64,000 nucleotides of DNA from Macrostomum hystrix (GCA_950097015.1 CATNEN010000038.1:22010001-22074000), one strand, 5' to 3'. Positions 8,400 through 61,503 are shown, counted from the first letter of the stretch. Numbers and translations are program-made. The notes: generated by a model not told the origin, from the letters alone.

Positions 8400-11300
8400 G
8401 TTGAGCTAAGCCAACCGTCCGGTCCAACGCTGGCTGCCACCACCAACACCGCCGGCGTTGTTCTCGGCGTTGTCGGCGGCGACGGTCCGCCTGGCGGAGC
8501 TAAGCGCGCCAGGCGCGGCCCGAGACCGCACGAAATGGAGGACGAAGATAGTTCCCTATTTGCCATTGTTAAACAGGGTCGAGGAGCTCTGCAACAGATC
8601 GCTGACGAATGGATTCAACAGTACAAGCAGGATAGGGATGCCGCCCTAGTCCGCTTATTGCAATTCTTCATTAGTAGTAGCGGTTGCAAGGGGCGCATCA
8701 CCATGGAGATGTACCTGAACGATAGCTACACGGAGATTATACGCAAGATGACGGAGCAATTTGATGAAGATAGCGGCGAATATCCTTTAATCATGACTGG
8801 ACCAGTGTGGCGTAAATTTCGTTCCAGCTTTGTAGATTTTATCACCATCCTGATTCGCCAGTGCCAGTACAGCGTTATCTACGATCAGTTCATGACGGAC
8901 ACTGTCATCTCGTTGCTAACTGGCTTAACCGATTCTCAGGTGCGAGCATTTCGTCACACTAGCACTCTGGCCGCTGTGAAACTAGTTACAGCCCTAGTTG
9001 AAGTGTCGCTCAGTGTGTCTATTAATCTAGATAATACCCAGCGTCAGTACGATGCCGAACGATTGAAAGCGCAGAATCGTCGAGCTCACGACAGGCTGGA
9101 CGGCTTATTGAAGAATAGACAGAAATTGCAAGAGAATCTAGAAGAGATCAAGACTATGATCACCTACCTGTTCAAGGGAGTGTTCATTCATCGCTATCGC
9201 GACGCTCAAGCGGAAATTCGCACCATCTGCATCCAAGAGATTGGCCAATGGATGAAGAAGATGCCGAATGTCTTCTTAGAAGATTCTTATTTAAAGTACG
9301 TCGGCTGGACATTGTACGATCGCGTAGCCGAGGTCCGCCTAACCTGTCTGAAATCGCTCCAGCCGCTGTACGAAGATCCTAACGCTGTTAGCAAGTTGGA
9401 ATTGTTTAGCAGCAGATTTAAGTCCCGCATCCTAGACATGACTCTAGACAAAGATAGCGAAGTAGCCGTCGAAGCTGTTCGCTGTGTCACCTGTATGCTG
9501 CGCAATCTAGATAGAATCTTAGACGACAAAGACGCCGAGAATATTTACGAACTGGTGTACTCCAGCCATCGGCCATTGGCTGTTGCCGCTGCCGAATTTC
9601 TCAATTTGAAACTGTTCCAACTAGACGAGCACGCGCCCCAGTTGCGCACTAAGAAGGGCAAGAAACGCAGCCAAAACACTGTCCTGCTGCGCGATCTAGT
9701 CCAATTCTTTATCGAGTCCGAATTAAATGAGCACGCCGCTTATTTAGTTGACAGCTTCTTTGACATCAACGACATGCTGCGCGACTGGGAGGCCATGATT
9801 GATCTGCTTCTAGAGGAGCCTGGCCGCGGCGAGGAGCCGCTTGGTGACCTTCAGGAGTCCTCTCTAATTGAAATCCTCGCCTGCTGCGCGCGTCAGGCCG
9901 CCACAGGCGAAAGTCCGGTCGGGCGTCAGGCTGGCAGGAAACAGATGACTAATCGAGAGATGCGACAGGTAAGTCTGGGAGATAAACTTGGAAGTAAACA
10001 ACAAGGGTAAACGGCACACACTAATTTTCTAAGTGAATTTTTTCGTATGAAGAGGTTGTTGCCTTGTGGTTAGGGTGTCAGACTCACGAATTCAAGGTCA
10101 GGGGTTCGAGTCCCGACTCTACTGGAACAATTTGTTAGCTTTAGCTTAGCTTAGCACCCAGTAATTGAGGGTAGGTGTGGCGTCCCCCCAGTCTATGGAC
10201 TTAACAGCCGTACGCAGCCTTCAAATGCGCCTCTTATAATTATTATTTCTATTTAAATAAAACAGGTGCAAGAGGACAAGCAGAAGCTCACTGAGCACCT
10301 CATTCCAACGCTGGCCCAACTGATCCTAAAATATGGCGAAGACACTGGCAAGATGCTCAACCTATTGTCTCTAGTGCAGTACATGGATCTCGATATGTTT
10401 GTCAGCACTCGCCAGGAAAAGCATCTGGATCTGCTGCTAAAGTACATGCAAGAGTCCATCGTTAAGCACACCGAAACCGAAGTCCTGCTAGCGTTTGCTC
10501 GAGTATTCGAATCTGTAACCCAAGAGGACTTGCAAATTGGCAGCAAATGCTTGGCCGTTCTCAACACTCTCATTGACAGACTAGTGGAGTCCTATAAGCA
10601 GGCCTATTTGAATTATTTTCAAGAGGAACGACCAGACGAAGACGACAAGTACGCGCTACTGTCGGCATTGAAGAGAATATTTGCTTTCTACTCTTATCAC
10701 GATCTGACTTCGTGGGATCTGTGGATCAGTCTGCTAACAATTTTCCGTTCGGCTCAGGAGCGGCCGTTCTATTACGAAGAGGTGGTTGCTAGGGGCATCG
10801 GTTGCGCAAATTTTGCCCTGTACTGGCAGCAGTATCGCCAGATGAAGGAAGGCCGGCCGGACAAGAATGAACAGAAAGATTTAAAGAAATGCGTGGAACA
10901 ATTCTTCCAGGTGAGACGGGGTAAAATCAATGATGGAAGGACAGTTGATGTTTGGGACTGACTGAATGACAGGTGGTTTTAATTTATCGGGAATTGTGGT
11001 AGGATTATCGAAAACAGTAGTGGGATTATCGGAAATGGTTGTAGGATTATCAATAATCATAATAGGATTATCAACAATCATAATAGGATTATCAACAATC
11101 ATAATAGGATTATCAACAATCATAATAGGATTATCAATATATTTAATAGGATTATCGATAATCATAATAGGATTATCAACAATCATAATAGGATTATCAA
11201 CAATCGTAATAGGATTATCAATAATTATAATAGGATTATCAACAATCATAATGGGATTATCAATAATTATAATAGGATTATCAACAATCATAATAGGATT

Positions 11301-13881
11301 ATCAATATATTTAATAGGATTATCGATAATCATAATAGGATTATCAATGATTATAATAGCATTATTAATAATCACAGTAAGTGTAATAATAAATGAAGGA
11401 GGATTGTCAATAGTTACAGTATGATTATTATCAATAATCAAAATAGGATTATCAAGAATTGTATGATTATATTAAGAATGGTGGTAGGATTAGCGGAAAT
11501 GTTAATTCCACTACCTGGACTGACATGTAGTGTTAACAACTGATGCAATGACAAGTTGTGTATTGTATGCTAGGCCTCTATACAGTTTAGTGATAAACGA
11601 AGAAATGTCAATGTTAGCAAAGAAAGCCATTTACTATTTCTCTTTTTTCCCTTAGGTGACCACAGCTTACCTGTCCCACGATGAGAAGTCTATAGCGAGC
11701 GAAGCCTTCGTCTCTATCTGCGACTTGCTGGTGGTATTCAGTAGGCACAACGAAGCGACCGGACTTCAGCAGGGATCAGAGCTGCAGCAGCAGCAGCCAG
11801 CTAGCAATGTTGTCACATTCACCGCTGATGCCGGCCTCCAATCAGGTCTGGTTCATTTCATGCAGCGTCGAGTATTTATCGAAGACGAGACAGAAACAGA
11901 CGAAGACGCCAAGATTGAAGAATTGCACAATCGGCGCACTTATCTAGCCAGCTTTGCCAAGTTAATCGTTTATAATTGCGTACCGCTGCAATTGGCTAGT
12001 CACATGTTTGTGCAGTATATTCGTTTCTATAACGATTTCGGCGACATTATGAAGACTACGCTGCAAAAGTGCAAAGAGATTAATAAACTGGATGCTACGC
12101 TGTGCATTGCCGCGACGCTGCAGAAGGCCTTCGCCCAGTTGCCAGCCAACGCTGATAGGGGCTCTCCTGGCTTCGTTGCGCTCAAAGATCTGGCTAGACG
12201 CTTCAATTTGAGCTTTGGATTAGATGCAGCTAAGGTTATTTTTGCATTAAAAAAGCGCGCAATTATTTTTTCTCATAATTCCTTCAACTGAACGTTTTTT
12301 CGATAGTCCCAAAAATCCATTCTTCTATCATTTCTATAAAGTTTCTAATAACCACATCGGCGTTTCTATAAACTCATCTGCGTTATCAATATCTCAATAA
12401 CTTTATCGATAGTCCCATCGGCGTTAAAAAACAACCCCATCATCGCTATCGATAATCTCAACAGGGTTATCGATGATCTTAACAACGTTATCGATGATCT
12501 TAACAACGTTATCGATAATCCCATCCGCCTTTCGATAATCCCATCAGCCTTTCGATAAACCCATCAGCGTTATCGATAATCCACTCAGCCTTTCAATAGT
12601 CCCATCAGCCTTTCGATAATCCCATCAGCCTTTCGATAATCTCATCAGCGTTATCGATAATCCCATCAGCCTTTCAATAATCCCATCAGCCTTTCAATAA
12701 TCCCATCAGCGTTATCGATAATCCCATCAGCCTTTCATTAATCCCATCAGCCTTTCGATAATCCCATCAGCCTTTCGATAATCCCATCAGCCTTTCGATA
12801 ATCCCATCAGCCTTTCGATAATCCCATCAGCCTTTCAATAATCCCATCAGCCTTTCGATAATCCCATCAGCGTTATCGATAATCCCATCAGCCTTTCGAT
12901 AATCCCATCAGCGTTATTGATAATCCCATCAGCGTTATCGATAATCCCATCAGCGTTATCGATAATCCCGTCTTTGATATAAAAATTCACATTATTGATT
13001 TTGTTAATCCCATCATCGCTATCGGTAATTCCTTTAATATTTTTAATAATCTCTGCAACATTTCCGATAACCCTATCAGCTTTTTCCATCAATATCTATC
13101 TGCGTTACCGGTGATAGCCGATAATCCTGTCATAATAACACACAACCATCTCACCCCCCCGATGCAGGTTCGCGAGCAGATGCGCTGCCTACACGAGGAG
13201 GGCGTGAAATTCGCCCTAGCCGACTGGGATCCGTCTTCTAATACGGCCGCTCCGCCGACTCCGCCCCACAATGTGGCATTCTTCGACGTCCTAGCCGAAT
13301 TCTCTAATAAACTATTGCGAGAAGACAAAGCCCAGCTGGCTAATTGGTTGCGCACCGGTTGGCAGGTGCGAACCACAGGCCTAGGCCAGCAATGGCAGAG
13401 TCTAATCTACTATTTGTCATCGTTGGAGAATCCGGATGATAGTTCTGTTAGTGGCGCCGCATCGGCTGCCGGTCAGCCGCACTCGCACCAGACTGGCGGT
13501 GGCCCCGGCCGCGGCAGCGGTCAGCGCGGCCGGCCGAAACGACCGCGCGATTCTTCGCTAACTACTTCAACTACAACTGGACCTGCAGGCGCCGCGTTGA
13601 ACAGCCCGCCTGGCGCTGCCGCAGCAGCCGCCGCCGCTGCGGCTTCTATGTCGGCTATAGCGTCGACGTCGATGTCTGGACCGCAGGCGATTTCAACGGC
13701 TGTCAAACGATCTAGGCGAGATCATTCGGCAATGCCGCCGCCTCCGCCGCCGCCCATGCAGTCTGGCGTTTCGGCTACTCCTGTCCAGGGTACACCTCAG
13801 CAGCCGCCACAATCGCACGGACCAACCACTTCGGTTCTGCAGCTCCGGTCGCATCAACAATTTTTAGCCGGGGGTCTATAA
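8400..13881 (+). CDS. STAG1/2: Cohesin subunit STAG/SA (Scc3); exons 8400-9968 (first in-frame ATG 8535), 10266-10910, 11656-12234, 13168-13881
   Basis: Strong STAG-domain motifs: FDEDSGEYPL, DSQVRAFRHTSTLAA, VFIHRYRD..EIR, YLKYVGWTLYD, HAAYLVDS, FYNDFGDIMKTTL, LKDLARRFNLSFG. Three phase-0 GT-AG introns. The true start is uncertain because the exon is open from the acceptor at 8399. Confidence 0.97.
10053..10231 (+). mobile_element. tRNA-derived SINE copy in STAG intron 1
   Basis: A box (ttgccttgtggttagg), B box (ggttcgagtcccg) and family tail ggtgtggcgtccccccagtctatggacttaacagccgtacgcagccttcaaatgcgc. Confidence 0.82.
10985..11500. repeat. 21-bp minisatellite (ATAGGATTATCAACAATCATA) in STAG intron 2
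   Basis: Direct tandem copies with degenerate ends. Confidence 0.95.
12400..12970. repeat. 20/21-bp minisatellite (GATAATCCCATCAGCCTTTC / GATAATCCCATCAGCGTTATC) in STAG intron 3
   Basis: Direct tandem copies; decayed copies extend to ~12300 and ~13130. Confidence 0.95.
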
Positions 13882-14159
13882 GAAGGCGTGGAATGGCATT
13901 TTTTGTTTTAATTTAGCTTCTTTCTTTTTTCTCAATATCAAGAATTAAAAATATTAATAAATAATAAACTTGTTCTTTAATGTTGTACCGTTGCATTGGG
14001 TAAATTATCTAGGTGTAAATTAAGTGTCGTTGCAAATACCTTGTTTAAATAAAAATTCTTTTTCGTGTCTTTTTTTGTCATTTGGTTATACTTGGTAGCT
14101 TTTTTCAATAAAATAAAATAAAACGTGCTTAGTATTTTAAGTTGATCAGCTTGTTCTGC

Positions 14160-14578
14160 CCCGCTAAAAAATAGGTATGTTTCTTTGGGTGATTCCAGTG
14201 GAATCTGCGGTGTTTCCAGAAAAAGAAACAGCCGAACGCTGGAAACAGACCAATCGGATGATTCCATGCTTAGAATCTACCCAACTGGGCGTTTTCTCGG
14301 TGCTTCTTGGTGGCGAAATGGAATCACCCAAAGAATCCTCCAGTTCGGAAGATTCCATGCTCAGAAACCGCCGAGGAATCGCCCGTAAATAAGTCTCTGG
14401 TTGTCCCATGGGCCACTGGTTCGGGTGATTCTTCGGCGGTTTCCGCACAATTTACGGTTTCATCGGCTGCTTCCTGGGTGGTTTCTTTAACTCTTGCGAG
14501 ATAGGGGGGATTTTGGTAGATTCCTCTCCTATTTTGCTCGAAAAACCCGCCGAAAAAGCAGCCGAATTTTTTACAGGG
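14160..14578. mobile_element. Putative CMC/EnSpm-like MITE
   Basis: Termini CCCGCTAAAAAAT / ATTTTTTACAGGG are imperfect inverted repeats flanked by GC on both sides (possible 2-bp TSD). The interior is rich in GAATC/GATTC motifs in both orientations. Confidence 0.55.
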
Positions 14579-15205
14579 GCTCTGTTGTATAAGTTATAAA
14601 GTTCTAAATCATAAAATATGATTTAATGTTGGCATGCTTGGTTTCGGTATTGCTAAATGGCGAAGTTCATAATTTGGCTTTGAAAATGCGCGATTTTATG
14701 CAGTTATGTATACATCCATCTCTCTCTTTTGTTAGCAAAGTAACTTATTAAAAAGTAGCGATTTAGATCCGTTAAAAAGCTACCTAGTTTTTCCCAACTT
14801 TTCTGTCTCCTATTTGCATCTTCGCTAGTATCTGAAATATGTATAGTGAATTTATTAGCGAAACCTGTTATGGCAGCTCTCTTACTATGCAGTGTGTGTC
14901 TGTACCTGTGTGTTTTGTTTGTATCTATCAAATTTGATTATTGCTAAACCTATTGTTTTTTGTTATACAAAGTTTTAATTAAAAATCTTACACTACTGTG
15001 TTTATACACTTCTAAACATTATCTACCCAGTAACTATTCGCTTGTATTTCTACCCCGTTGAAATTATAATTTACTGTTTATTTCACAGCCTTCTATTTCA
15101 TTAGGCAAATTCAGGAATTTTTAATTAGAAAATTGAACAATTTCAACTTTGCTGTCTGTTTTTTGTTGTCCATAACTAAATTATTAGGAGTTTAAATTAT
15201 TTCTT

Positions 15206-15410
15206 GTTTCCATAGCAACCAAACATTCAATATCGGTGAAAAGTCTCCAAATTGTAATGGCACGCGCATCACCATGTTGTTTCGTGTACCAATACTATGT
15301 AACGTTACCATAGCAACCAGTTTGTGCAGCTAATTTGTTCTAAGATAAATCGTTTAGTTATTTTAGCTAATTTTGTTTTTGTTAGCAACCAGTGTTAGCA
15401 ACATGGCGGG
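15206..15410. promoter_or_regulatory. RFX X-box cluster / probable promoter
   Basis: GTTTCCATAGCAAC (15206-15219) and GTTACCATAGCAAC (15304-15317) match GTNNCCATRGNAAC. Half sites TAGCAAC at ~15383 and ~15396. AACATGGCGG (YY1-like) at ~15400. Confidence 0.65.
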
Positions 15411-15591
15411 TTTTAGTGTTGCCAGTCAGCCGGATGCAAGTGCTCTTAAAGATATTAATCTATTAATAAATTTGGCCATTATTTATCTGCTATAACATAC
15501 GTCCCAATGTCGCCGATGCCATTGTGTTTTCTTCCCTGTTTTAATATTCAACAACTTACGTCCCGCGTGTTAATCTTCTACTTTTTTTCAG

Positions 15592-15671
15592 TTTTATTCT
15601 GCGCTGAACAGATCATGTACATATGGTGTGGCAACCGTTAAGTTAAATCGCGTGTTAACCAACAATCTTTG
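15592..15671 (+). other. Possible non-coding 5' UTR exon of GTF3C4
   Basis: Preceded by ctttttttcag and followed by gtaagg. The next good acceptor (ttttcttcag, 25276) lies 75 bp before the GTF3C4 ATG. Confidence 0.35.
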
Positions 15672-16136
15672 GTAAGGTATATTAGATTCACGCACTAGGA
15701 CTAGTATATTTTGTGTACATAACAATTCAACTAAAACCTCTACCTATAATTATATCCATCAGAGGTATAGTAACTAAGTAGGAAAATAATATTAGTTTTT
15801 TTTAAATCCATATTGTAACTAACAAGACACTGTCAATATTAATGTCATGAACTTCATGAACTGCTATTGTTTTCAATCGTTTATTTTAATGCAGCAAAAT
15901 CAATTTACACTTTAAACAGTGAAAAATAAACACGTACAATTTTTTTTACTCAGCCTCGCTTCGCTCTCCATCTCTCCCTCCCTGCCTGTCCGTCTGTGTC
16001 CGCGTTGTTTCTTCATTTTAATTCTCGTTTCTTTTAATATTTGCAACACCACTTTTGTGAGCCTTTGTTGTTGATCACTTTTTATTGTAGTTCTTAGTAA
16101 ATAAATTACTATTTGTCCTTCTACCACTCTGCATTA

Positions 16137-19100
16137 GTCTCTCCGAATCTCTAATGTCTCTCTGAATCCCTGATTGTCTCTCCGAATCCCTGAATGTCTC
16201 TCCGAATCTCTAATGTCTCTCTGAATCCCTGATTGTCTCTCCGAATCCCTGAATGTCTCTCCGAATCTCTAATGTCTCTCTGAATCCCTGATTGTCTCTC
16301 CGAATCCCTGAATGTCTCTCCGAATCTCTAATGTCTCTCTGAATCCCTGATTGTCTCTCCGAATCCCTGAATGTCTCTCCGAATCCCTGAATGTCTCTCC
16401 GAATCTCTAATGTCTCTCTGAATCCCTGATTGTCTCTCTGAATCCCTGAATGTCTCTCCGAATCCCTGAATGTCTCTCTGAATCTCTAATGTCTCTCTGA
16501 ATCCCTGATTGTCTCTCCGAATCCCTGAATGTCTCTCCGAATCTCTAATGTCTCTCTGAATCCCTGATTGTCTCTCCGAATCCCTGAATGTCTCTCCGAA
16601 TCCCTGAATGTCTCTCCGAATCTCTAATGTCTCTCTGAATCCCTGATTGTCTCTCTGAATCCCTGAATGTCTCTCCGAATCCCTGAATGTCTCTCTGAAT
16701 CTCTAATGTCTCTCCGAATCTCTGAATGTCTCTCCGAATCTCTAATGTCTCTCTGAATCCCTGATTGTCTCTCTGAATCCCTGAATGTCTCTCCGAATCT
16801 GTAAATGTCTCTCCGAATCTGTAAATGTCTCTCCGAATCTGTAAATGTCTCTCAGAATCCCTGATTGTCTCTCTGAATCCCTGAATGTCTCTCCGAATCT
16901 GTAAATGTCTCTCCGAATCTGTAAATGTCTCTCTGAATCCCTGAATGTCTCTCTGAATCCCTGATTGTCTCTCTGAATCCCTGAATGTCTCTCCGAATCT
17001 CTGAATGTCTCTCCGAATCTCTGAATGTCTCTCCGAATCTCTGAATGTCTCTCCGAATCTCTGAATGTCTCTCCGAATCCCTGAATGTCTCTCCGAATCT
17101 GTAAATGTCTCTCCGAATCTGTAAATGTCTCTCCGAATCTGTAAATGTCTCTCCGAATCCCTGAATGTCTCTCCGAATCTGTAAATGTCTCTCCGAATCC
17201 CTGAATGTCTCTCCGAATCTGTAAATGTCTCCCCGAATCTCTGAATGTCTCTCCGAATCCCGGAATGTCTCCCCGAATCTCTGAATGTCTCTCCGAATCT
17301 GTAAATGTCTCTCCGAATCCCTGAATGTCTCTCTGAATCCCTGAATGTCTCTCCGAATCCCTGAATGTCTCTCCGAATCTGTAAATGTCTCTCCGAATCT
17401 CTGAATGTCTCTCCGAATCTGTAAATGTCTCTCCGAATCCCTGAATGTCTCTCTGAATCCCTGAATGTCTCTCTGAATCCCTGAATGTCTCTCCGAATCC
17501 CTGAATGTCTCTCTGAATCCCTGAATGTCTCTCTGAATCCCTGAATGTCTCTCCGAATCCCTGAATGTCTCTCCGAATCTGTAAATGTCTCCCCGAATCT
17601 CTGAATGTCTCTCCGAATCCCTGAATGTCTCCCCGAATCTCTGAATGTCTCTCCGAATCTGTAAATGTCTCTCCGAATCCCTGAATGTCTCTCTGAATCC
17701 CTGAATGTCTCTCCGAATCCCTGAATGTCTCTCCGAATCTGTAAATGTCTCTCCGAATCTCTGAATGTCTCTCCGAATCTGTAAATGTCTCTCCGAATCC
17801 CTGAATGTCTCTCTGAATCCCTGAATGTCTCTCTAAATCTCTGAATGTCTCTCCGAATCTCTGAATGTCTCTCCGAATCCCTGAATGTCTCTCCGAATCT
17901 GTAAATGTCTCTCCGAATCTCTGAATGTCTCTCCGAATCTGTAAATGTCTCTCCGAATCCCTGAATGTCTCTCTGAATCCCTGAATGTCTCTCCGAATCC
18001 CTGAATGTCTCCGAATCTGTAAATGTCTCTCCGAATCCCTGAATGTCTCCCCAAATCTCTGAATGTCTCTCCGAATCTGTAAATGTCTCTCCGAATCCTT
18101 GAAAGTCTCTCTGAATCCCTGAATGTCTCTCCGAATCCCTGATTGTCTCTCCGAATCTGTAAATGTCTCTCCGAATCTCTGAATGTCTCTCCGAATCTGT
18201 AAATGTCTCTCCGAATCCCTGAATGTCTCTCTGAATCCCTGAATGTCTCTCTGAATCCCTGAATGTCTCTCCGAATCCCTGAATGTCTCTCTGAATCCCT
18301 GAATGTCTCTCTGAATCTCTGAATGTCTCTCCGAATCTGTAAATGTCTCTCCGAATCTCTGAATGTCTCTCCGAATCTCTAATGTCTCTCTGAATCCCTG
18401 ATTGTCTCTCTGAATCCCTGAATGTCTCTCCGAATCCCTGAATGTCTCTCTGAATCCCTGAATGTCTCTCCGAATCTCTAATGTCTCTCTGAATCCCTGA
18501 TTGTCTCTCTGAATCCCTGAATGTCTCTCCGAATCTGTAAATGTCTCTCCGAATCTGTAAATGTCTCTCCGAATCTGTAAATGTCTCTCAGAATCCCTGA
18601 TTGTCTCTCTGAATCCCTGAATGTCTCTCCGAATCTGTAAATGTCTCTCCGAATCTGTAAATGTCTCTCTGAATCCCTGAATGTCTCTCTGAATCCCTGA
18701 TTGTCTCTCTGAATCCCTGAATGTCTCTCCGAATCTCTGAATGTCTCTCCGAATCTCTGAATGTCTCTCCGAATCTCTGAATGTCTCTCCGAATCTCTGA
18801 ATGTCTCTCCGAATCCCTGAATGTCTCTCCGAATCTGTAAATGTCTCTCCGAATCTGTAAATGTCTCTCCGAATCTGTAAATGTCTCTCCGAATCCCTGA
18901 ATGTCTCTCCGAATCTGTAAATGTCTCTCCGAATCCCTGAATGTCTCTCCGAATCTGTAAATGTCTCCCCGAATCTCTGAATGTCTCTCCGAATCCCGGA
19001 ATGTCTCCCCGAATCTCTGAATGTCTCTCCGAATCTGTAAATGTCTCTCCGAATCCCTGAATGTCTCTCTGAATCCCTGAATGTCTCTCCGAATCCCTGA

Positions 19101-25100: not shown

Positions 25101-25152
25101 GAATGTCTCTCCGAATCTCTGAATGTCTCTCGAAATCTCTGAAGTTCTCTCT
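16137..25152. repeat. ~9-kb satellite of 19/20-bp units (GAATC[T/C]CTGAATGTCTCTC[C/T], variant GAATCTGTAAATGTCTCTCC), ~450 copies, with higher-order repeats
   Basis: Continuous tandem array. Rare variants recur at a 1736-bp offset. Confidence 0.98.
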
Positions 25153-25350
25153 GAGCATTCTTGTCCATTGGTGACAGTAAAACGTCATGAATTTGTTCGT
25201 CGTTTTTAACACTAAATTTTTAGTTGTATGCTTTTTAATTTCAAGCAACTACAATTTTACTCAATATTTTCTTCAGCTTGAGGACAAATAATAAGTAATA
25301 AAACGACACTGTTGCCATCATACTACTAACAGTAGCTGTAATTTTAAAAA

Positions 25351-42619: not shown

Positions 42620-43055
42620 TCACTTATATCACCCCATCAACTAATTGTCGTATCGTTTATTCATGTCTGGTGTCTATGCGCCATTTCCTTCATTTGATAA
42701 CTAAGAAGCACAGTATCCAATTTTACAGCTTACAGATTCGAACTTCTGACATATTCGGTAACTACTAACATATTCAACACTACTAACAAATATCAATATT
42801 AGGCGTAATACTACTCAATCATAACACATGAGTAGCATATAGATGATAAATGAGTTTCCAATCGATTCCACACAATATAACATTGAAACTGCACTAAATT
42901 GATACTTGATTACTGCAAGGTAAATAATTATGATACGACTTTGCGTCTTTGTTTATTTTCTCGAACAATTGAGTAGAGCTTGTATTAGCGTAAAATGCAA
43001 AAATATTCTTACTACACTACTGATGTAAGTAGATAAGTAACGCATTTAAATCAGT

Positions 43056-46000: not shown

Positions 46001-49000
46001 GAAGAGTAGCTAGAAGGCCGTTGGGAACGGCCGACGAAACATTTAACAGTTCAATGCCAAGGAGGCCGAGAATGTGAGCCCAGGTGACCGCCTGGCAGCA
46101 GAGAGGATCAGCGGATGGCTGGGCGATGGCATCGGCTGACAGCACCGCTTGCAGACTCGGCCAGAAGGTTGGGCTGCGAAAATTTGGATTGGTCGTGGTA
46201 ATGAAAAGCTCAGTCTTTTCAGTGGTCAGGTAAGTGACCAATTCAGGATGTTTCAGGGGTCAGGTGAGTGACCAATTCAGGATGTTTCAGGGGTCAGGTG
46301 AGTGACCAATTCAGGATGTTTCAGGGGTCAGGTGAGTGACCAATTCAGGATGTTTCAGGGGTCAGGTGAGTGACCAATTCAGGATGTTTCAGGGGTCAGG
46401 TGAGAGACCTGCGGTAGATCACTGATAAAACCAGCAAGCAAATTTTTACAAACCTATTTCTAATCCTGCCAGTAAGAATGGTGCAGTTTTGTAGCCAAAG
46501 GCTAGAGAACAGTTGCACAACTGACGACAGCAGTAGCGGAGAGATCTGAAACAACAGATGGTGGATATTTGTTTAATGAATAGCGAACAACTATGAATAG
46601 TTACAATACAGTGAAAATACCGTATCGGAAGAATTTAAAAGGCCAAGTGCAATAGTTAGACAGCAGTCGGCTTTAGAGTCGCTTGTTGATTTAGCAGCAG
46701 CAGCAGCAGCAGTCGCTGATTTTGTTGGGGTCGTACTGACTAGATCGTTCAACAAGGAAGTTTTGCCGCACAGAACTGATTCGCTGAGGAAATCAAATAG
46801 CAGGGCACGGACATCGTCAGACTCGGTGGCGGAAGCCAGGCGATCTAGTAGTGTTCGCGCGAGTCGCTTGGCGCACCCGTCCACCAGGGTTCGATTTGTG
46901 GTGCGCGAGAACTGCACACAATAGATGCAAATTATTCAAACTTTAAAATAGTGCGCAAATGTTCGCAATAATTTACTGTAAGTAGCAATGCAGGAAAAAG
47001 TGTATTATCAGCAGCTTTTGGATTGACTAAACTTGAGTGACTGAAATTCACCGATGAAATCGAACAAAGCTTCGACAGATTTAAATATTTTCAGAAAGAC
47101 ATTTCGGATAATCCGCTAAGGAATCGAACGAAGTTTTGTTTCGATCGGCTCACCTTAACAAGCTTCTTTAGCACAATCAGAGACATTTTGGTGACACGAG
47201 GTGTACTATAATACCAGGCGAAAGTAAGCAACGACTGCGTGATTGAGTCCGGATTGAGACCCAGGCTAAATAAGGATTCGGTGTTTTGCTGCTGCTGCTG
47301 CTGCTCGGACGTTGGAATCAGCCGATTCAACAGAGAAAGAGCTAGCCAAACAGTGCGAGCCAATGGCAGACTGTCTGTGGTTAGGCCGCTGCGGGTTGTT
47401 CGCACAATTTCATTTTATTTTAAAGTGACAATCTTTACTTGCTACTAAGTAAGTAGGATTTTAGAAAAATATTTTTTTTTAATTAAAAAACTCACTACGT
47501 GCTCATGTCGCTCTCCAGAATTAATTTGTCGACAGGTATTGTGGCTAGCTGAGCAATGACTGGCGCAACTAGATGACTGCGAAGCATTTTCAGGCATAGC
47601 GACTGGTAGACTGGCGGGCCGCTATATTTCATTGAGCGAAAACAAGAGAAAGCAGTTTCTTTATTTTAACCAAGGGACATTGTTGCTCAAGGGGATCTTG
47701 AAAAATTGTATGAAAATGGACAGGGGATCATTTAGACTTGAAATTATGATCTCAGAAAGTTGTACATTTGCAATGGGATATGACAGGACGGTTAAGTAAA
47801 AAAGTGATCTGGGAGAGTTATAGCTTCAAAATAGGGATATGGGAGAGTTGCAGCTTAAAAATGGGGATCTGGGAGAGTTGTATATTCAAAATGGTGATCT
47901 GGGAGAGTTGTAGATTCAAAATGGGGATCTGGGAGAGTTGTATATTCAAAATGGGGATCTGGGAGAGTTGTAGATTCAAAATGGTGATCTGGGAGAGTTG
48001 TAGATTTAAAATGAGGATTTGGGAGAGTTGTAGATTCAAAATGGGGATCTGGGAGATTTGCACATTCAAAATGGGGATCTGGGAGAGTTGTAGATTCAAA
48101 ATGGTGATCTGGGAGAGTTGTAGATTCAAAGTGAGGATTTGGGAGAGTTGTAGATTCAAAATGGGGATCTGGGAGAGTTGTAGATTCAAAATGGTGATCT
48201 GGGAGAGTTGTAGATTCAAAATGGGGATCTGGGAGAGTTGTAGATTCAAAATGGTGATCTGGGAGAGTTGTAGATTTAAAATGAGGATTTGGGAGAGTTG
48301 TAGATTCAAAATGGGGATCTGGGAGATTTGCAGATTTAAAATGGGGATCTGGGAGATTTGCAGATTCAAAATGGGGATCTGGGAGAGTTGTAGATTCAAA
48401 ATGGTGATCTGGGAGAGTTGTAGATTCAAAATGAGGATTTGGGAGAGTTGTAGATTCAAAATGGGGATCTGGGAGAGTTGTAGATTCAAAATGGGGATCT
48501 GGGAGAGTTGTAGATTAAAAATTGGGATCTGGGAGAGTTTTAGATTCAAAATGGGGATCTGGGAGAGTTGTAGATTCAAAATGGGGATCTGGGAGAGTTG
48601 TGGATTCAAAATGGGGATCTGGGAGAGTTGTAGATTCAAAATGGGGATCTGGGAGAGTTGTAGATTAAAAATTGGGATCTGGGAGAGTGGTAGATTCAAA
48701 ATGGGGATCTGGGAGAGTTTTTTTGGATTCAAAATTGGGATCTGGGAGAGTTGTAGATTCAAAATGGGGATCTGGGAGAGTTGTAGATTAAAAATTGGGA
48801 TCTGGGAGAGTTTTAGATTCAAAATTGGGATCTGGGAGAGTTTTAGATTCAAAATTGGGATTTGGGAGAGTTGTAGATTCAAAATGGGGATCTGGGAGAG
48901 TTGTAGATTCAAAATGGGAACTGGGGGAGATTAAGCTTTAAATCGGGGATCTGGGAGAGTCGCGGGTTTAAAATAGGGATCTTGGGGAGGGGTAGTGCTA

Positions 49001-52000
49001 AAATGGAATTGCAGTAGAGCTAAAGCTTCGTAAATGGGATCTTGGAGAGTGGCAGCTCTCAAATAGGATCACTGGGGATTTTTACCTGCTAGCGTCGCGA
49101 TCCGAGGCAGCCGCAGCAGCAGCCGCCGCAGTGTTGAGCACTTCGTGAAGAAACAGCAGGCACTTGCATGCGATGCGCACACTGTCCATTGGATCAGCGT
49201 AACGCCAGCGTTGAAAATCTGGCAGCAGTACCCGGGAAACGTAGACGATGCCGGATAGCAACAGATTACTGGGCGGACTGAGCTGACAAACAGCCAGAGA
49301 GACAAGAAAGTCAAGATACGCCGACATCACGGGATATTGGCCAATGGCGCGTTCGCGATTATTGTGTACCCAACAAATTAGCGAGCTGTCGATCTGGTAG
49401 CTGTGGGTCGTAGGTTTAAGCCAATAAATTACAAAAAATAACCCACCCTTAATTACTTCAGCTAATGCTGGTACCTATTTAACCTTTTACCTATTTAAGT
49501 GTCTTGATAAAGGACACAAATTGTTTCAGTGGAGCCGGGAATCGAACCATCAACCTTCAAGTCGTGAGTCCCACGCTCTAACCACTAGGCTACAACCTTG
49601 AATCAATACAATAATAACTAACAATGCAACAGACCTATTAGGCTTATCCGCTTCGAATGGACTCCGAATCAAGGGTAGGGCGCTTCCGCCGGCGCCGATT
49701 CCGCTAGATCGTTCCAATAGTCTGGCCAGACGACTGGCATCCATTGGCAGACAGGCAGCTAGAAATGCAACACAGCTTGACAATAGGACCGGATAGCTTT
49801 GCAGACCAGCAGATTGTCTGTGGGTCGAGTTGGATTTGTATGAATAATACGCCTTACACTACTAATAGTAATAGAAAATATTTGAAGGCATTCATTCTTT
49901 AAAAGACAGTAACCAGCTACTAAAACGGCACTTTTTGGTTCTCTTTTGGCACCCTTAATAGGGCCGTTTTAAAAACTGTCAATAGATATTCAAATATGTT
50001 TAATGGGATAGGTATAGATTATTATGATTATTACAAATGTCTGTTTAGAAAAAACCATAGCGAATTTCGCAAAGCAAAAATATCTGTCAAAACGGCCCTT
50101 TTTAGGATTGCTTTGAGTAACTTGAGAATAACTTACCTGACAAGTAGGCAGATAGCGTGATCAGCCAAACGCAGAGCCTCTAGTCTAAACTTGCCCTTCA
50201 ATAACCAGGTGCGAGAATCAGATAGCAGGCCAGATAAACGATTAACTTCCATAGGAGACAATTGATGCAGCGGTTGACAACTGCGGCTGGCCAACTCGTG
50301 CTCAATCACTGGCCAGACTGAGTAGGTCTCGGGTAGTTGCCAGGTAACACAATTGTTGCCTACGGAGGTAGGAGAAATCAGCAAAACTGCAACCTCAGCT
50401 TGTTGAAACTAATCCTTTGGATGAAAAATCACCAAATTCAATGATGATAGTGACTAGATTAGTGACTGATCCAACCAGATTAGTGACTGATCCAACCAGA
50501 TTAGTGACTGATCCAACCAGATTAGTGACTGATCCAACCAGATTACTGACTAATCCAACCAGATTACTGACTAATCCAACCAGATTACTGACTAATCGAA
50601 CCAGATTAGTGACTAATCCAACCAGATTAAGGACTGATCCAACCAGATTTGTGACTAATCCAACCAGATTACTGACTAATCCAACCAGATTACTGACTAA
50701 TCCAACCAGATTTGTGACTAATCCAACCAGATTTGTGACTAATCCAACCAGATTTGTGACTAATCCAACCAGATTTGTGACTAATCCAACCAGATTACTG
50801 ACTAATCCAACCAGATTACTGACTAATCCAACCAGATTACTGACTAATCCAACCAGATTTGTGACGAATCCAACCAGATTAGTGACTAATCCAACCAGAT
50901 TACTGACTAATCCAACCAGATTACTGACTAATCCAACCAGATTACTGACTAATCCAACCAGATTTGTGACGAATCCAACCGGATTAGTGACTAATCCAAC
51001 CATTTCATTCGGCGTTTTCGACCAGCTTACCGACAATCTCGCCTGGACAGCCCGCCGGTATCACGGGCCCGCCACCGCCGCAGCCGCCCAGGGGTCGCCG
51101 ATCCTGCGTGGCGATTACCGAGCGCGGATTGTCATCGGCAGCGGCCACGACGATGTCAGCGTGGTCAGCTAATTCAGCGATTCTCTCTGAGAATGCGCCC
51201 AGGGAGCGAACTAGATCGCAAACCGGATCCGCGTCTTCGAAATTGTCGGCTTCGCCGTCGCAACAAGATCCGTCCTCGCCGTTTGACGTAGCCATACCGG
51301 CCAATTGTGCGCAGACGTGGAAAATGGCCAAACTAGCCGGGAATTCATTGCACATTCGTTCTAGCACCGGCGATAATGATCGCAGTGAGAATCGGCGCCT
51401 GTGCTCATGCTGCTGCTGCTGCTGTTGCTGGCCGGAAGCGCAGACAGAGGGCAGTAGGGACGCGAATAAAGATAAGTAGGCCGATTTGTGCTCACCCAAT
51501 GAGTCCAGAGCAGCATAAGCGGACACCAGTGCTAGAAGGTCCATCACTAGGCAATTGTACAATTGTAGCAGAGCAGACGAACACGAGATGTCAGCGCCGG
51601 CATCCACTCCAACACCGACGCCCATGTTTACCTGGGGTAGTTTTTTGGGGTAAGCTTTTTGTCTTCTTAACTTTTTAGTTATATTCTAACCTTTTCAAGA
51701 ATCTTCCTACCTGTCTTGGATCAGGAATCTTCCCAATAACCAAGGAATCGTCCGAAATGTCTGGGAATCTACCCAGAATGTTTCTCGAATCTGGGAATCT
51801 TCCCAATAATACAGGAATCTTCCCAATAATACAGGAATCTTCGTAATAATCTAGGAAACTTCCCGAAAATATAGGAATCTTCCTTATAATCCAAGAATCT
51901 TCCCAATAGTCAAGGAATCTTCCCAATAATCTAGGAATCTTCCAAATAATCTAGAAATCGTCGGAAATGTCTAGGAATCTTCCCAACAATCTAGGAATCT

Positions 52001-55000
52001 TCCCAATAATCTAGGAATCGTCCGAAATGTCTAGGAATCTACCTAGACTGTTTCTCAAATCTAGGAATCTTCAATAATCTAGGAATCGTCTGAAATGTCT
52101 GGGAATCTACCTAGACTGCTTCCCAATAATCTAAGAATCTTCCCAATAATCTAGGAATCGTCCGAAATGTCTAGGAATCTTCCTAGACTGTTTCTCAAAT
52201 CTAAGAATTTTTCCAATAATCTAGGAATCTTCCCAATAATCTAGGAATCTTCCCAATAATCTAGGAATCTTCCCAATCATCTAGGAATCGTCCGAAATGT
52301 CTTAGAATCTACCCAGAATGTTTCTCTAATCAAGAAATCTTCCCGGCTACACTTTTAACTAGCTAGGATTATTCCAAACTCTCTAGAAGTTGGACTAAAA
52401 AAAACAAACCTGTCGTCTTGTTACAAAATCAGTCCCTACCTGTATATCGGGTCCCAAGCAGCCGGCCAGATAGTCGAAGCCAGCCAAACGTCGAATAGCT
52501 TTGTCAGCTAATACCACAGCCGTAGAGGCGCTGTCACCGCCTGAGTCGTTGGCGGCCCTACTGCCTAGCACGACGGCGCACATCATCAACACCGGAGCGT
52601 GGCTTCGCCGATCGCCGGATAATTGATTGCGCAACTTGTCCGACAGTCTATCGAATACCGGCATCGGCCCGACGGCTACAGGCGAGTCCTCGCCCGCTTC
52701 GGACAATTGTCGACACGCTTCGGCTGGATCCAAAGCAGCTAGAACAATCAGGCATTGAAGGAAGCCGATACGCCTACAGCGGGCGTCGGCGTCGAGATCG
52801 GAATCAATTTCGACATTGTCGGGCAGTAGGTTTGACGGCGGCGCTAGACGCTGCTGCAGTAGAGCTTCGATGGCGTCGACTAAAGCGTCGACATTTGACG
52901 AAAGTTTTTCGGCGTAGGCGGCGGATGACACTAGAAGGTAGACAGCCTGAAGGGTCTCTTCGGCTTCCTGAAGTCGCTGCTCGCGCCATTGTCGAGATTC
53001 CTCGTCATCCTAGAAGATGGGACGGCCACTTCTAATACAATTCAGGAGAAACATAAACTCATGTAACCTTAAAGATGAAAAACACTATTTATAGGCCTAC
53101 TCACATCCAGAAACGGAAAGTACTTGCTGGATTGTCGCTGGCCACTGGCATCGCACAGGGACGTGTAGAACTGCATTAGCTGCGGGTGTACATATAAAAT
53201 TCAGGAAATCCATATAGCTTCTACCCCCTGACCCTTCAGTGCCTCAGCTTCCACATCCTGTTCCTTCAGTGCCTCAGCTTCCACATCCTGTTCCTTCAGT
53301 GCCTCAGCTTCTACCCCCTGACCCTTCAATGCCTCAGCTTCCACATCCTGTTCCTTCAGTGCCTCAGCTTCTACCCCCTGACCCTTCAGTGCCTCAGCTT
53401 CCACATCCTGTTCCTTCAGTGCCTCAGCTTCTACCCCCTGACCCTTCAGTGCCTCAGCTTCCACATCCTGTTCCTTCAGTGCCTCAGCTTCTACCCCCTG
53501 ACCCTTCAATGCCTCAGCTTCTACCCCCTGACCCTTCAGTGCCTCAGCTTCCACATCCTGACCCTTCAGTGCCTCAGCTTCTACCCCCTGACCCTTCAAT
53601 GCCTCAGCTTCTACCCCCTGATCCTTCAGTGCCTCAGCTTCCACATCCTGTTCCTTCAGTGCCTCAGCTTCTACCCCCTGACCCTTCAGTGCCTCAGCTT
53701 CCACATCCTGTTCCTTCAGTGCCTCAGCTTCTACCCCCTGACCCTTCAATGCCTCCGCTTCTACCCCCTGACCCTTCAGTGCATCAGCTTCCACATCCTG
53801 TTCCTTCAGTGCCTCAGCTTCTACCCCCTGACCCTTCAATGCCTCAGCTTCTACCCCCTGATCCTTCAGTGCCTCAGCTTCCACATCCTGTTCCTTCAGT
53901 GCCTCAGCTTCTACCCCCTGACTCTTCAGTGCCTCAGCTTCTACCCCCTGTTCCTTCAGTGCCTCAGCTTCCACATCCTGTTCCTTCAGTGTCTCAGCTT
54001 CTACCCTCTGACCCTTCAGTGCCTCAGCTTCTACCCCCTGACCCTTCAGTGCCTCAGCTTCTACCCCCTGATCCTTCAGTGCCTCAGCTTCCACATCCTG
54101 TTCCTTCAGTGTCTCAGCTTCTACCCCCCGACCCTTCAGTGCATCAGCTAAAATTTCTTAGAAACGCAGCTTTAAAACGGCCTTACCAATCCGAGCACAT
54201 CCTTGTAGTCGCGTCCGGCCAGATCCATCACCACTGGTTGCAGCAGGTCAGCCAGAGCCGACCAAGGCGCCGAGGCTGCCTCCGCGAAGGCCACTTTGTA
54301 CAGTCGAAGCATGCAGAGTCGTTCAGTAAAGTAGAACTGACGCAGCTGTGGCAGCAGGCTGCACAAACTGCTTGATGAGGCTAGCTCGTGCTGCAGAACA
54401 GGTGAGAATAATAAAAGCTTAGAATTATAAAAACCTGACTAACGAAAAGTGACCCCACACCCTGTTACATAGGGCTACTCTGATCAAAGTGACCCCACAC
54501 ACTGTTACATAGGGCTACTCTGATCAAAGTGACCCCACACCCTGTTACATAGGGCTACACTGATCAAAGTGACCCCACACCCTGTTACATAGGGCTACAC
54601 TGATCAAAGTGATCCCACACCCTGTTACATAGGGCTACACTGATCAAAGTGATCCCACACCCTGTTACATAGGGCTACACTGATCAAAGTGACCCCACAC
54701 ACTGTTACATAGGGCTACTCTGATCAAAGTGACCCCACACACTGTTACATAGGGCTACTCTGATCAAAGTGACCCCACACCCTGTTACATAGGGCTACTC
54801 TGATCAAAGTGACCCCACACCCTGTTACATAGGGCTACACTGATCAAAGTGACCCCACACACTGTTACATAGGGCTACTCTGATCAAAGTGACCCCACAC
54901 CCTGTTACATAGGGCTACACTGATCAAAGTGATCCCACACCCTGTTACATAGGGCTACACTGATCAAAGTGATCCCACACCCTGTTACATAGGGCTACAC

Positions 55001-56756
55001 TGATCAAAGTGACCCCACACCCTGTTACATAGGGCTACACTGATCAAAGTGACCCCACACACTGTTACATAGGGCTACTCTGATCAAAGTGACCCCACAC
55101 ACTGTTACATAGGGCTACTCTGATCAAAGTGACCCCACACCCTGTTACATAGGGCTACACTGATCAAAGTGATCCCACACCCTGTTACATAGGGCTACAC
55201 TGATCAAAGTGATCCCACACCCTGTTACATAGGGCTACACTGATCAAAGTAACCCCACACACTGTTACATAGGGCTACTCTGATCAAAGTGACCCCACAC
55301 CCTGTTACATAGGGCTACACTGATCAAAGTGATCCCACACCCTGTTACATAGGGCTACACTGATCAAAGTGACCCCACACCCTGTTACATAGGGCTACAC
55401 TGATCAAAGTGACCCCACACCCTGTTACATAGGGCTACTCTGATCAAAGTGACACCACACCCTGTTACATAGGGCTACACTGATCAAAGTGACCCCACAC
55501 CCTGTTACATAGGGCTACTCTGATCAAAGTGACCCCACACCCTGTTACATAGGGCTACACTGATCAAAGTGACCCCACACACTGTTACATAGGGCTACTC
55601 TGATCAAAGTGACCCCACACCCTGTTACATAGGGCTACTCTGATCAAAGTGACACCACACCCTGTTACATAGGGCTACACTGATCAAAGTGACCCCACAC
55701 CCTGTTACATAGGGCTACTCTGATCAAAGTGACCCCACACCCTGTTACATAGGGCTACACTGATCAAAGTGACCCCACACCCTGTTACATAGGGCTACTC
55801 TGATCAAAGTAACCCCACACCCTGTTACATAGGGCTACTCTGATCAAAGTGACCCCACACCCTGTTACATAGGGCTACTCTGATCAAAGTGACCCCCACA
55901 CCCTGTTACATAGGGCTACTCTGATCAACGTGACCCCACACCCTGTTACATAGGGCTACTCTGATCAAAGTGACCCCACACCCTGTTACATAGGGCTACT
56001 CTGATCAAAGTGACCCCCACACCCTGTTACATAGGGCTACTCTGATCAACGTGACCTCACACCCTGTTACATAGGCTACTCTGATCAAAGTGACCCAGTT
56101 TCAAAACTCACCTTCAAATTGTCGCTATCCAAATCTGGATTCGATGACAAGAATTCCAGGAACACAGAATGAGCAACTTGAGCATTAAGATTCTGTGAAA
56201 CAGTTTATAAACCGAAAATTGCTTGATTGAACAAAATATTATGTTTCAAGTTTTACTTATAATTCAGGAAAAGTTTCTAAAAACATACCAAATAAGCAGA
56301 CAATTTGCTCATGAAAGTTTGCACTTCTGGTTGCAAATTGAGCGCCTTAACATCTGCTTCAATTTCCTGATCAAGCTGTCTGGAAATTTTTTGTGACAAA
56401 TGAGATTTTGGGTTAATTCACTATGAGGCAATATACATATATTATCGTTTTATTTGAATGGTTGAAAAACATCAAAAGACTATACTGTTAATTCCAAAAA
56501 ACTAACACTTATATTGAACTTACTTTGCAGGCTTATAGTACAAAGGTCCATCCTTCAGTATATCTTTAACATCCAACACCTCCTGACAGAAGGTCTCCTA
56601 AAATTGACATTTTATTGATTTATTATTAGCTTGTTTATTTATTTATTTATTTAGAAACATAATTTAATGTGATAAGCTTCTTATCCTCTTACTTACCTCA
56701 TCTAAATCAGTACTGTTTTGTTGTAAAAATGTTAGCAAGTGATACATATTGCTGTT
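43056..56756 (-). CDS. NUP188: Nucleoporin Nup188; predicted exons (high to low) 56756-56697, 56597-56524, 56379-56289, 56192-56112, 54390-54187, 53179-53124, 53009-52440, 51631-51031, 50359-50137, 49817-49635, 49400-49086, 47621-47496, 47388-47154, 46911-46621, 46545-46454, 46173-45075, 44577-43963, 43454-43056
   Basis: Motifs typical of Nup188: LKDGPLYYKP, QFYFTERLCMLR, ERAIGQYPVMSAYLDFL..LLPDFQRWRY, LFSSLW..SPTFWPSL. Exons join in phase through GT-AG introns. The start codon (ATG at 56747 or upstream) and a few junctions are uncertain. Confidence 0.85.
43512..43748. repeat. 44-bp minisatellite (CATCATGATTGGGTCACTATATGGGGATCATTGTTAGTGATACT), last NUP188 intron
   Basis: 5 copies plus decayed gggatcattg motifs up to ~43870. 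Confidence 0.93.
44608..45063. repeat. 31-bp minisatellite (AAATATCCCATCTACAAACTTCACCTCCCAG), NUP188 intron
   Basis: About 15 copies. Confidence 0.96.
46222..46406. repeat. 34-bp minisatellite (GGTCAGGTGAGTGACCAATTCAGGATGTTTCAGG), NUP188 intron
   Basis: About 5.5 near-identical copies. Confidence 0.95.
47800..49075. repeat. 30-bp minisatellite (AAATGGGGATCTGGGAGAGTTGTAGATTCA), NUP188 intron
   Basis: About 40 copies with degenerate ends. Confidence 0.97.
49490..49598 (-). mobile_element. tRNA-derived SINE 5' part in a NUP188 intron
   Basis: The minus strand reads ggttgtagcctagtggttagagcgtgggactcacgacttgaaggttgatggttcgattcccggctccactgaaacaatttgtgtcctttatcaagacacttaa. Confidence 0.8.
50449..51001. 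repeat. 21-bp minisatellite (ACTAATCCAACCAGATTAGTG), NUP188 intron
   Basis: About 26 copies. Confidence 0.96.
51695..52345. repeat. 20-bp minisatellite (CTAGGAATCTTCCCAATAAT) with interleaved variants, NUP188 intron
   Basis: GGAATC recurs every ~20 bp. Confidence 0.93.
53216..54148. repeat. 30-bp minisatellite with two alternating variants (CAGCTTCTACCCCCTGACCCTTCAGTGCCT / CAGCTTCCACATCCTGTTCCTTCAGTGCCT), NUP188 intron
   Basis: About 31 copies with no indels. Confidence 0.97.
54446..56097. repeat. 40-bp minisatellite (AAAGTGACCCCACACCCTGTTACATAGGGCTACTCTGATC), ~41 copies, NUP188 intron
   Basis: Highly homogeneous tandem array. Confidence 0.98.
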
Positions 56757-61492: not shown

Positions 61493-61503
61493 CGCATATG
61501 AAA

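Follow-up and report, generated by a model that had tools for sequence, protein, structure and literature searches.

Vertebrate hypervariable minisatellites, a class also known as variable-number tandem repeats (VNTRs), have units that share short 'core' sequences. The closest described system to the one reported here is that known from Crassostrea gigas, the Pacific oyster, in which Cg_HINE, non-autonomous elements of the Helentron type, bear satellite-like arrays (PMC7492417; reviews PMC10048060, PMC12628747). In nematodes, periodic An/Tn clusters (PATCs) were proposed in a 2026 preprint to have their origin in a 35-bp minisatellite, borne by a Helitron, that was remodelled in genes with germline expression (bioRxiv 10.64898/2026.08.08.743475). 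Within the flatworm genus Macrostomum, the assembly of M. lignano is reported to be 15% simple and tandem repeats, an unusually large share (PMC5730564), and total repeats of 22.9% and 28% were given, with details deferred, for M. hystrix and M. cliftonense, respectively (PMC10468722). Our literature search yielded no article about minisatellites in flatworm introns. Here we analyse a 64-kb stretch of the M. hystrix genome (GCA_950097015.1 CATNEN010000038.1:22010001-22074000; 220 Mb in 42 contigs), hereafter the window, in which introns of the genes STAG, GTF3C4, INPP4 and NUP188 are largely occupied by tandem arrays. A preliminary description of this DNA had suggested that a process active in broadly or germline-expressed genes repeatedly converts local intron sequence into arrays, each private to its intron, an interpretation that our results support in part, its main claim being contradicted. 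We assign a probability of about three in four to a plainer explanation, namely, that these are ordinary non-coding minisatellites of a minisatellite-rich genome, which would be born and grow neutrally in any unconstrained DNA from seeds provided by mobile elements and by local sequence.

The window holds five genes, as follows.

639-6598, + strand: IRF-domain gene (approximate, weak exon-chaining model; PF00605 at 642-791)
8535-13881, + strand: STAG/SCC3 cohesin subunit gene (Pfam STAG, SCD and HEAT_SCC3-SA; exon-chaining model)
25351-31043, + strand: GTF3C4-like coding sequence (6 exons; 5 introns verified by transcript contigs)
32225-42619, + strand: INPP4-like gene, PH-domain/CX5R 4-phosphatase-like (8 predicted exons)
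43056-56747, - strand: NUP188 gene (about 19-20 exons; PF21093; M. lignano Nup188 protein)

Their structures were modelled with an exon-chaining gene finder that combines codon log-odds trained on secure exons, splice-site scores, frame continuity and an intron penalty of 6. The model recovers exactly the RNA-verified structure of GTF3C4, for which spliced contigs of ~2.8 kb from four transcriptome-like runs of one study give GT..AG joints at introns 25620-26203, 26783-27561, 28027-28364, 28763-29953 and 30281-30453. For NUP188, the finder was re-run under the guidance of P0001 protein matches, and one P0001-supported exon was added. Tandem Repeats Finder (TRF) returned 63 rows, which merge into 37 tandem-repeat intervals, 27 of them at least 150 bp long; these cover 42.7% of the window and 53% of the region 10911-56111, both limits of which are intron ends in the gene model. 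The presence of 19 array-filled introns, as claimed in the preliminary description, is confirmed by the combination of the gene model and TRF: 2 in STAG, 3 in GTF3C4, 6 of the 7 in INPP4 and 8 in NUP188. The eight NUP188 introns had been counted out of 17, but 18-19 introns are predicted by our model, the counts differing because some micro-exons are uncertain. An array is likewise found in 16 of the 17 introns longer than 450 bp, the exception being, as had been noted, GTF3C4 intron 1. The arrays, with their locations and relatives elsewhere in the genome, are as follows.

10984-11459: 21-bp array in STAG intron 2 (10911-11655), member of a family with the core GGATTATC at 12 or more other loci
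12512-12969: 20-bp array in STAG intron 3 (12235-13167), related in inverted orientation to the 10984 array, with relatives at 20 or more further loci
16137-25151: 9-kb array of 453 copies of a 20-bp unit in the STAG-GTF3C4 spacer, the largest of the window, with about 30 related loci
26802-27548: 25-bp array occupying 96% of GTF3C4 intron 2 (26783-27561), with one marginal relative
28039-28275: 34-bp array in GTF3C4 intron 3 (28027-28364), its unit with the core ACCTGTTAGA
28828-29888: purine-rich 16/24-bp array in GTF3C4 intron 4 (28763-29953), its apparent relatives inseparable from compositional chance
31154-31512: 16-bp array in a spacer, starting ~20 nt past the end of the GTF3C4 transcript contig
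33136-35202: 21-bp array of 98 copies occupying 92% of INPP4 intron 1, with at least 15 related loci
36070-36699: 15/45-bp array in INPP4 intron 35963-36862, with four related loci
37461-38632, + strand: truncated transposon copy in INPP4 intron 37307-38714, made of a 24-bp VNTR (37461-38495) and a 134-bp terminus, with 9 related loci
39125-40305: 22-bp array occupying 96% of INPP4 intron 39096-40324, with at least six related loci and a unit that mimics a 3' splice junction
40661-40876: 17-bp array in INPP4 intron 40641-41008, without a clear relative
41251-42103: 30-bp array occupying 97% of INPP4 intron 41245-42124, with no relative seen, a candidate local amplification
43514-43748: 44-bp array in a NUP188 intron, private in that none of the 16 candidates, every one of them scored, matched it
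44610-45064: 31-bp array in a NUP188 intron, with at least 12 related loci
46217-46409: 34-bp array in a NUP188 intron, with one related locus
47806-48989: 30-bp array in a NUP188 intron, from a family of about 40 or more loci (295 candidates)
50456-51002: 21-bp array in a NUP188 intron, with three related loci of at most 88% identity
51788-52315: 20-bp array in a NUP188 intron, with one related locus
53216-54149: 30-bp array in a NUP188 intron, from a family of at least 25 loci
54446-56096: 40-bp array occupying 99% of NUP188 intron 54439-56111, effectively private
58777-59087, 60225-60879, 61150-61492, 61504-62164 and 63318 to beyond 64000: five arrays upstream of NUP188 in DNA without coding signal

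According to TRF, the units of the window arrays are 14-55 bp long and are repeated head-to-tail 5-453 times with 75-98% matches, and many arrays have higher-order periods. The arrays are non-coding: in the GTF3C4 contigs they are spliced out within GT..AG introns, and most periods are not multiples of 3. Splicing around the GTF3C4 intron arrays is exact, and contig depth inside the arrays is close to zero. The purine-rich array of GTF3C4 intron 4 contains 39 donor-like AAGTGAG motifs on the sense strand (GTGAGT 14 times, GTGAGG 29 times). These look-alikes are unused, the transcript contigs displaying the authentic joint only. Tandem repeats make up 72% of the intron DNA of STAG, GTF3C4, INPP4 and NUP188. 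For array-bearing introns the median length is 890 bp, falling to 141 bp once the array is subtracted, compared with 156 bp for array-free introns, the shortest of which are 40-113 nt here. The median gap is 51 nt between donor and array and 67 nt between array and acceptor, and no preference of the arrays for the donor side is apparent. Arrays may therefore be regarded as having inflated mini-introns of roughly 60-270 bp to 0.3-2.2 kb, their growth presumably halting only at the few bases that the donor, branch point, polypyrimidine tract and acceptor require. We also considered that the arrays might be artefacts of long-read assembly, given that they are taken from the assembly alone and that transcript contigs do not span array sequence. 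However, the arrays display internal divergence, higher-order structure and decayed edges, the exon order and splice joints across them are exact, the same pattern recurs at 20 random loci on several contigs, and M. lignano was independently reported to be unusually rich in simple and tandem repeats (PMC5730564). An artefactual origin is thus hardly credible.

The arrays are not special to the four genes, which the preliminary description had labelled 'housekeeping', because they are as common between genes as inside them. The tandem-repeat content of the DNA outside the gene models is as follows.

13882-25350: spacer, 79% tandem repeat
31044-32224: spacer, 30% tandem repeat
42620-43055: spacer, 0% tandem repeat
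56748-64000: DNA without coding signal, 39% tandem repeat

Pooled, the spacers are 60% tandem repeat, versus 72% for the introns of the four genes, or 59% when the IRF introns are counted as well. The 9-kb array is situated downstream of the STAG stop codon (13881) and ahead of the GTF3C4 transcript, the contig of which starts ~47 nt before 25300. For comparison with the rest of the genome, twenty 10-kb stretches (L009-L028) were taken at pseudo-random positions on ten contigs, 200 kb in all or 0.09% of the genome. Tandem repeats account for 30.3% of this sample, which includes 71 arrays of at least 150 bp, with a range of 1.4-67% per 10 kb; it is the stretches with coding retrotransposons that are poor in arrays. 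Two such retrotransposons were seen at array-poor loci: an open 2016-aa gag-pol frame of the Ty3/gypsy type (L028:3951-9998) and an open 1128-aa frame of a long interspersed element with endonuclease, reverse transcriptase and RNase H (L018:3-3386). Several Pfam-identified exons of the sample have arrays as neighbours. In L009, the Ion_trans_N exon of an HCN-type channel gene is separated from the Ion_trans exon by an array (5213-7060), and one at 1864-3328 of L027 fills the intron that separates two SBF exons of an SLC10-type transporter gene. Tandem repeats amount to 59% of stretch L023, which has a TRP_2 exon of the TRPC type, and L017 has arrays on both sides of a single-exon P450. A search of the genome for muscle myosin (PF01576) gave an exon spacing that implies introns of up to about 1.4 kb. 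By analogy with their families in other animals, the HCN-type and SLC10-type genes would be tissue-restricted.

These data bear directly on the idea of a transcription-coupled or germline-specific process that makes a private array out of the sequence of each intron in broadly expressed genes. It would account for 19 array-bearing introns in four plausibly broadly expressed genes next to an array-poor IRF gene. The poverty of the latter, pointed out in the preliminary description, was reproduced: its region, for which the gene model is weak, has 5% tandem repeat and carries dispersed-repeat copies at 1647-1963 and 5840-6422. The few arrays that appear to be locally derived and lack relatives would fit such a process too. 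However, the spacers, home to the largest array, are just as dense, random genomic DNA is 30% tandem repeat, and introns of HCN-type channel and SLC10-type transporter genes, judged tissue-specific from their families elsewhere, are filled as well. Moreover, most units have relatives in other arrays, as described below, and the 5% of the single array-poor gene falls inside the normal scatter of 1.4-67% per 10 kb. A process peculiar to broadly or germline-expressed genes is therefore very unlikely, both results that the preliminary description had named as refuting it, equal density outside introns and recurrence of units in the genome, having been obtained.

Relatives of each array were sought by searches of the M. 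hystrix genome itself; candidates were listed, and for some arrays only part of them was scored. Because alignments of arrays with arrays inflate scores, chance was calibrated with shuffled units: for each array, 1,100 synthetic arrays of shuffled units were compared with the 71 arrays of the random sample, giving 78,100 pairs, a number close to the estimated number of arrays in the genome, with BLAST scoring matched by reproducing a hit of 95.1 bits. For most arrays no shuffled pair exceeded 60 bits. At least 12 of the 19 intron arrays, as well as the 9-kb spacer array, exceed this null, and their related loci elsewhere range in number from 1 to more than 40. The relative of the 26802 array is marginal against the same null. 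A family was not established for the 28828 array, for which shuffled units of equal composition reach 534 bits. Clear relatives were not found for 43514, 41251, 40661 and 28039, with 40 of 163 or 434 candidates scored for the last three, and 54446 has one 65% hit only. Thus, among the candidates scored, the units described as private remain so for 43514, 41251, 40661, 28039 and effectively 54446, while at least 12 of the 19 recur at other loci, as members of many families rather than a few. Identity is 65-80% between loci, compared with 85-98% within an array. Together with the higher-order periods, this difference suggests that arrays expand and homogenise locally, possibly through replication slippage or unequal exchange.

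At BLAST level, the window pairs agree with the earlier statement that no unit is reused between introns, except for the arrays of STAG introns 2 and 3 (10984 and 12512), which are inverted relatives with 69% identity and 95 bits. Several units nevertheless have 10-14-bp cores in common. Among 96 unit consensuses, the 7-mers TGTTAGA (9 arrays versus 0.5 expected from shuffles) and AGACAGG (7 versus 0.3) are over-represented. The near-palindromic core ACCTGTTAGACAGG occurs in units of differing length from L009, L010, L011, L017 and the window array 28039, the core GGATCTGGGA in L016, L017, L023 and the window arrays 47806 and 44610, and the core GGGATTATCGA in L023 and the window arrays 10984, 12512 and 33136. 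Alignments of units irrespective of rotation and strand gave 28 pairs with a score of at least 12, versus 4 expected, and 14 pairs with a score of at least 14, versus 0.7 expected. Related arrays also cluster locally in both orientations, with 6 of the 13 BLAST-related pairs found in one locus, compared with 1.3 expected. In one stretch (L009:11-10000), four arrays with the ACCTGTTAGACAGG core and units of 20-21 bp lie in both orientations within 10 kb of the HCN-type channel gene.

It had also been suggested that the arrays are selected as chromatin or anti-silencing elements, loosely analogous to PATCs. Two likenesses would be compatible with such a role. PATCs of C. elegans are, like the arrays considered here, abundant intronic non-coding DNA of repeat origin (PMC4947018), and their reported descent from a transposon-borne 35-bp intron minisatellite is a real parallel (bioRxiv 10.64898/2026.08.08.743475), some intron arrays of the window being transposon-borne as well. 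The analogy, however, fails at the level of sequence. The spectral power of W (A/T) at 9.8-10.8 bp, set against 200 shuffles of each unit, revealed no excess of ~10-bp A/T periodicity (mean z = -0.05, p = 0.64, n=96 units), and no phasing of unit lengths with the 10.4-bp helical repeat was seen (Rayleigh p about 0.23). The arrays thus lack the 10-bp An/Tn periodicity of PATCs, their units are highly diverse with a mean A+T of only 55%, and, unlike PATCs, they are also found outside introns, where they are just as frequent, and, as far as tested, in several gene classes. By this comparison, selection of the arrays as PATC-like elements would be a scarcely probable explanation.

Seeding by miniature inverted-repeat transposable elements (MITEs) had been put forward as one possible source of the arrays. 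In the window, transposon carriage is evident for the array in INPP4 intron 37307-38714. Its 24-bp VNTR (37461-38495) runs on into 134 bp of unique sequence with a terminus at ~38632, ending ...GACAACTGGG. An 89% copy (L030) shares both array and tail and diverges directly after the tail. Furthermore, a young family of seven copies (L031-L037) displays the same layout: all end ...TTTTTTTGGCAACCGGG, followed by unrelated flanks, and the sharp common end ...GGCAACCGGG stands next to a 24-bp VNTR (e.g. L034:334-2057). On the opposite side of the VNTR, these copies are 99.8-100% identical over more than 780 bp, as far as the compared sequence extends. The element is longer than 2.5 kb, and its VNTR varies from about 0.5 to more than 1.7 kb among near-identical copies, which implies that array length changes far faster than sequence. 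Since the left part of the element is missing, 37461-38632 represents a truncated insertion into a pre-existing intron, the ends of which lie 154 and 82 nt away. A second carrier was found in the random sample as two MITE copies of roughly 510-540 bp (L012:4980-5490 and L025:5858-6396), with 17-bp terminal inverted repeats (CAGGGGTCGGCAACCTT), an 8-bp target-site duplication, a central 16-bp array (CCCTGTCTCATCTCTC) and an internal palindrome. These features fit elements of the hAT type, and the finding of two copies in 200 kb of random sequence implies a high copy number. Element termini around an array in several copies were established for these two cases, one terminus being available for 37461-38632. 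MITE seeding thus finds support in one transposon-borne array of the window and in a hAT-like MITE elsewhere, and no carrier was shown for the other 18 intron arrays. In the families of 53216, 47806, 44610, 50456, 33136, 10984 and 12512, homology ends at the array edges, an observation uninformative on carriers because short flanks would be undetectable at 65-80% identity.

A minority of the arrays (54446, 41251 and 43514) look locally born, in partial agreement with the proposed conversion of local intron sequence, while most units have relatives elsewhere. Intron 54439-56111 consists of 15 nt (GTGAGTTTTGAAACT), 41 copies of a 40-bp unit and 7 nt (TCGTTAG); intron 41245-42124 consists of 6 nt (GTAAAA), 29 copies of a 30-bp unit and 21 nt. 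With a single unit, these would be mini-introns of 62 and 57 nt, respectively, near the length of the shortest array-free introns, and from their sequence the arrays look like amplifications of a mini-intron interior. The 22-bp unit of the 39125 array, TCACTCTCTCAG/TTTATGAGAT, resembles the 3' splice junction of its own intron, TCACTCTCTCAG/tttatgaaat, first exon bases included. As the unit copies this junction, intron 39096-40324 contains ~54 decoy acceptors. The likeness points to a birth in place, possibly by duplication of the splice junction, but the relatives of this unit at other loci leave the direction of cause unclear.

How far transposons account for the whole array load depends on the weight given to these local cases. 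Conceivably, essentially all arrays are cargo of MITEs, Helitron-like elements or 5'-truncated elements, as in the Pacific oyster, with local birth negligible and flanks lost through age or truncation. Two carrier families were encountered within about 330 kb of sequence, flanks of 60-130 bp would elude BLAST among members that are 65-80% identical, related arrays cluster locally in both orientations (L009; STAG introns 2 and 3), palindromic cores are common to units, and the oyster offers a precedent (PMC7492417). By contrast, homology halts at the array edges in the seven families named above, and in the two fullest introns without relatives (41245-42124 and 54439-56111) only 6-15 nt on the donor side and 7-21 nt on the acceptor side are free of array, which leaves no space for transposon ends. 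The unit at 39125, which mimics its own splice junction, also speaks for a local source. We therefore consider an exclusively transposon-borne origin rather unlikely. Still more doubtful is a broader scheme in which seeding by mobile-element minisatellites with short palindromic cores would mainly set the length of Macrostomum introns and spacers, with turnover far faster than point mutation, and in which some arrays of germline-expressed genes would have acquired a role as boundary elements, mechanical or of chromatin, paralleling the Helitron-minisatellite origin of PATCs.

For ordinary minisatellites of a minisatellite-rich genome, the data suggest the following course. Arrays of 12-55-bp units would arise and grow in introns of many kinds of genes, just past transcript ends and in spacers. 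One source of seeds would be dispersed families of related units, some of them carried by transposons such as the 24-bp VNTR element and the hAT-like MITE; the other would be local tandem duplication of an intron interior or splice junction. The distribution and families of the arrays, the two transposon carriers and the correct splicing are direct observations; we infer that growth is neutral, by which mechanism it proceeds and how much each source contributes. Several observations weigh against this account. The random sample is small and unannotated, and the assignment of arrays outside the window to introns or spacers comes from a few Pfam-identified exons. The tissue specificity of the HCN-type and SLC10-type genes is taken from other animals, not from expression breadth. 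Array density is very uneven, both among the random stretches and at the IRF gene, although loci rich in coding transposons are array-poor. Nor does the account give a reason for the array abundance of the M. hystrix genome. The arrays are derived from the assembly and not from DNA reads, the matching runs looking like transcriptomes. Finally, most families are without flank homology, and only one of the 19 intron arrays is proven to be transposon-borne.

The arrays have the hallmarks of classical minisatellites: head-to-tail units of 12-55 bp in non-coding arrays of 0.2-9 kb at very many loci, often intronic, with higher-order periods and short cores (ACCTGTTAGACAGG, GGATCTGGGA and GGGATTATCGA) common to otherwise different units. 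They differ in scale, with arrays making up about 30% of the genome sample and 72% of intron sequence in the four genes, and in that nearly every window intron above 450 bp bears one. With Cg_HINE they share the dispersal of short arrays in gene-rich DNA as central or subterminal cargo of non-autonomous elements, the variation of repeat number by copy and the linkage of families through repeat modules. However, the carriers identified here are a hAT-like MITE (17-bp terminal inverted repeats, 8-bp target-site duplication) and a larger unclassified element with a single sharp end. They showed no Helentron features, and most array families have no carrier shown. Introner elements offer a further comparison, as some introns of the window are nearly all one repeated element between splice sites. 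Unlike introners, the families described here share the array alone, not splice sites or intron ends, and the one proven transposon of the window sits within an existing intron.

With the failure of the claim about housekeeping genes, little follows from it. As genome architecture, the pattern merits mention in a Macrostomum genome paper: most long introns consist of a mini-intron and one array. Part of the array load is brought by active transposons, with VNTR length shifting among near-identical copies. The published repeat annotation of M. hystrix probably undercounts minisatellites, since tandem repeats alone make up 30% of our sample, compared with the published total of 22.9% (PMC10468722). 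The arrays are relevant to assembly, gene prediction and the design of transgenes and primers in this regeneration model, as well as to studies of intron-size evolution.

The genes of the window are identified with differing certainty. The identity of STAG is secure by three Pfam domains (PF08514, PF21581 and PF24571), as is that of NUP188 by PF21093 and by exon-by-exon tblastn with the 55%-identical M. lignano protein UniRef100_A0A1I8HQW7. GTF3C4 is recognized by a weak zf-TFIIIC Pfam match only, yet its structure is the best established of the window's genes. In the INPP4-like gene, a PH domain is the sole Pfam match; a C-terminal CKSGKDRT P-loop motif and weak similarity to both the P-Rex IP4P domain and Atlas INPP4 clusters make an INPP4-like phosphatase a lead for this gene.

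The window also contains dispersed repeats, and no Rfam families were found in it. Downstream of STAG, a 420-bp repeat resembling a short interspersed element (14160-14579) has 1965 candidate copies in the genome. The 40 copies scored are 96-98% identical, and the repeat has therefore been recently active. In the IRF region, an element of ~556 bp (5867-6422) is 99.3% identical to copies in the random stretches L014 and L020 and by its sequence belongs to a young transposon family. One short dispersed repeat is represented by fragments at 1647-1963 (IRF intron), 10048-10230 (STAG intron 1) and 49441-49612 (short NUP188 intron), with 76-96% copies in several random loci and in at least eight other places of the genome. 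In the last GTF3C4 exon, a glutamine-rich (CAG/CAA) stretch at 30459-30678 draws many unrelated transcript contigs, which produce spurious joints and high depth there.

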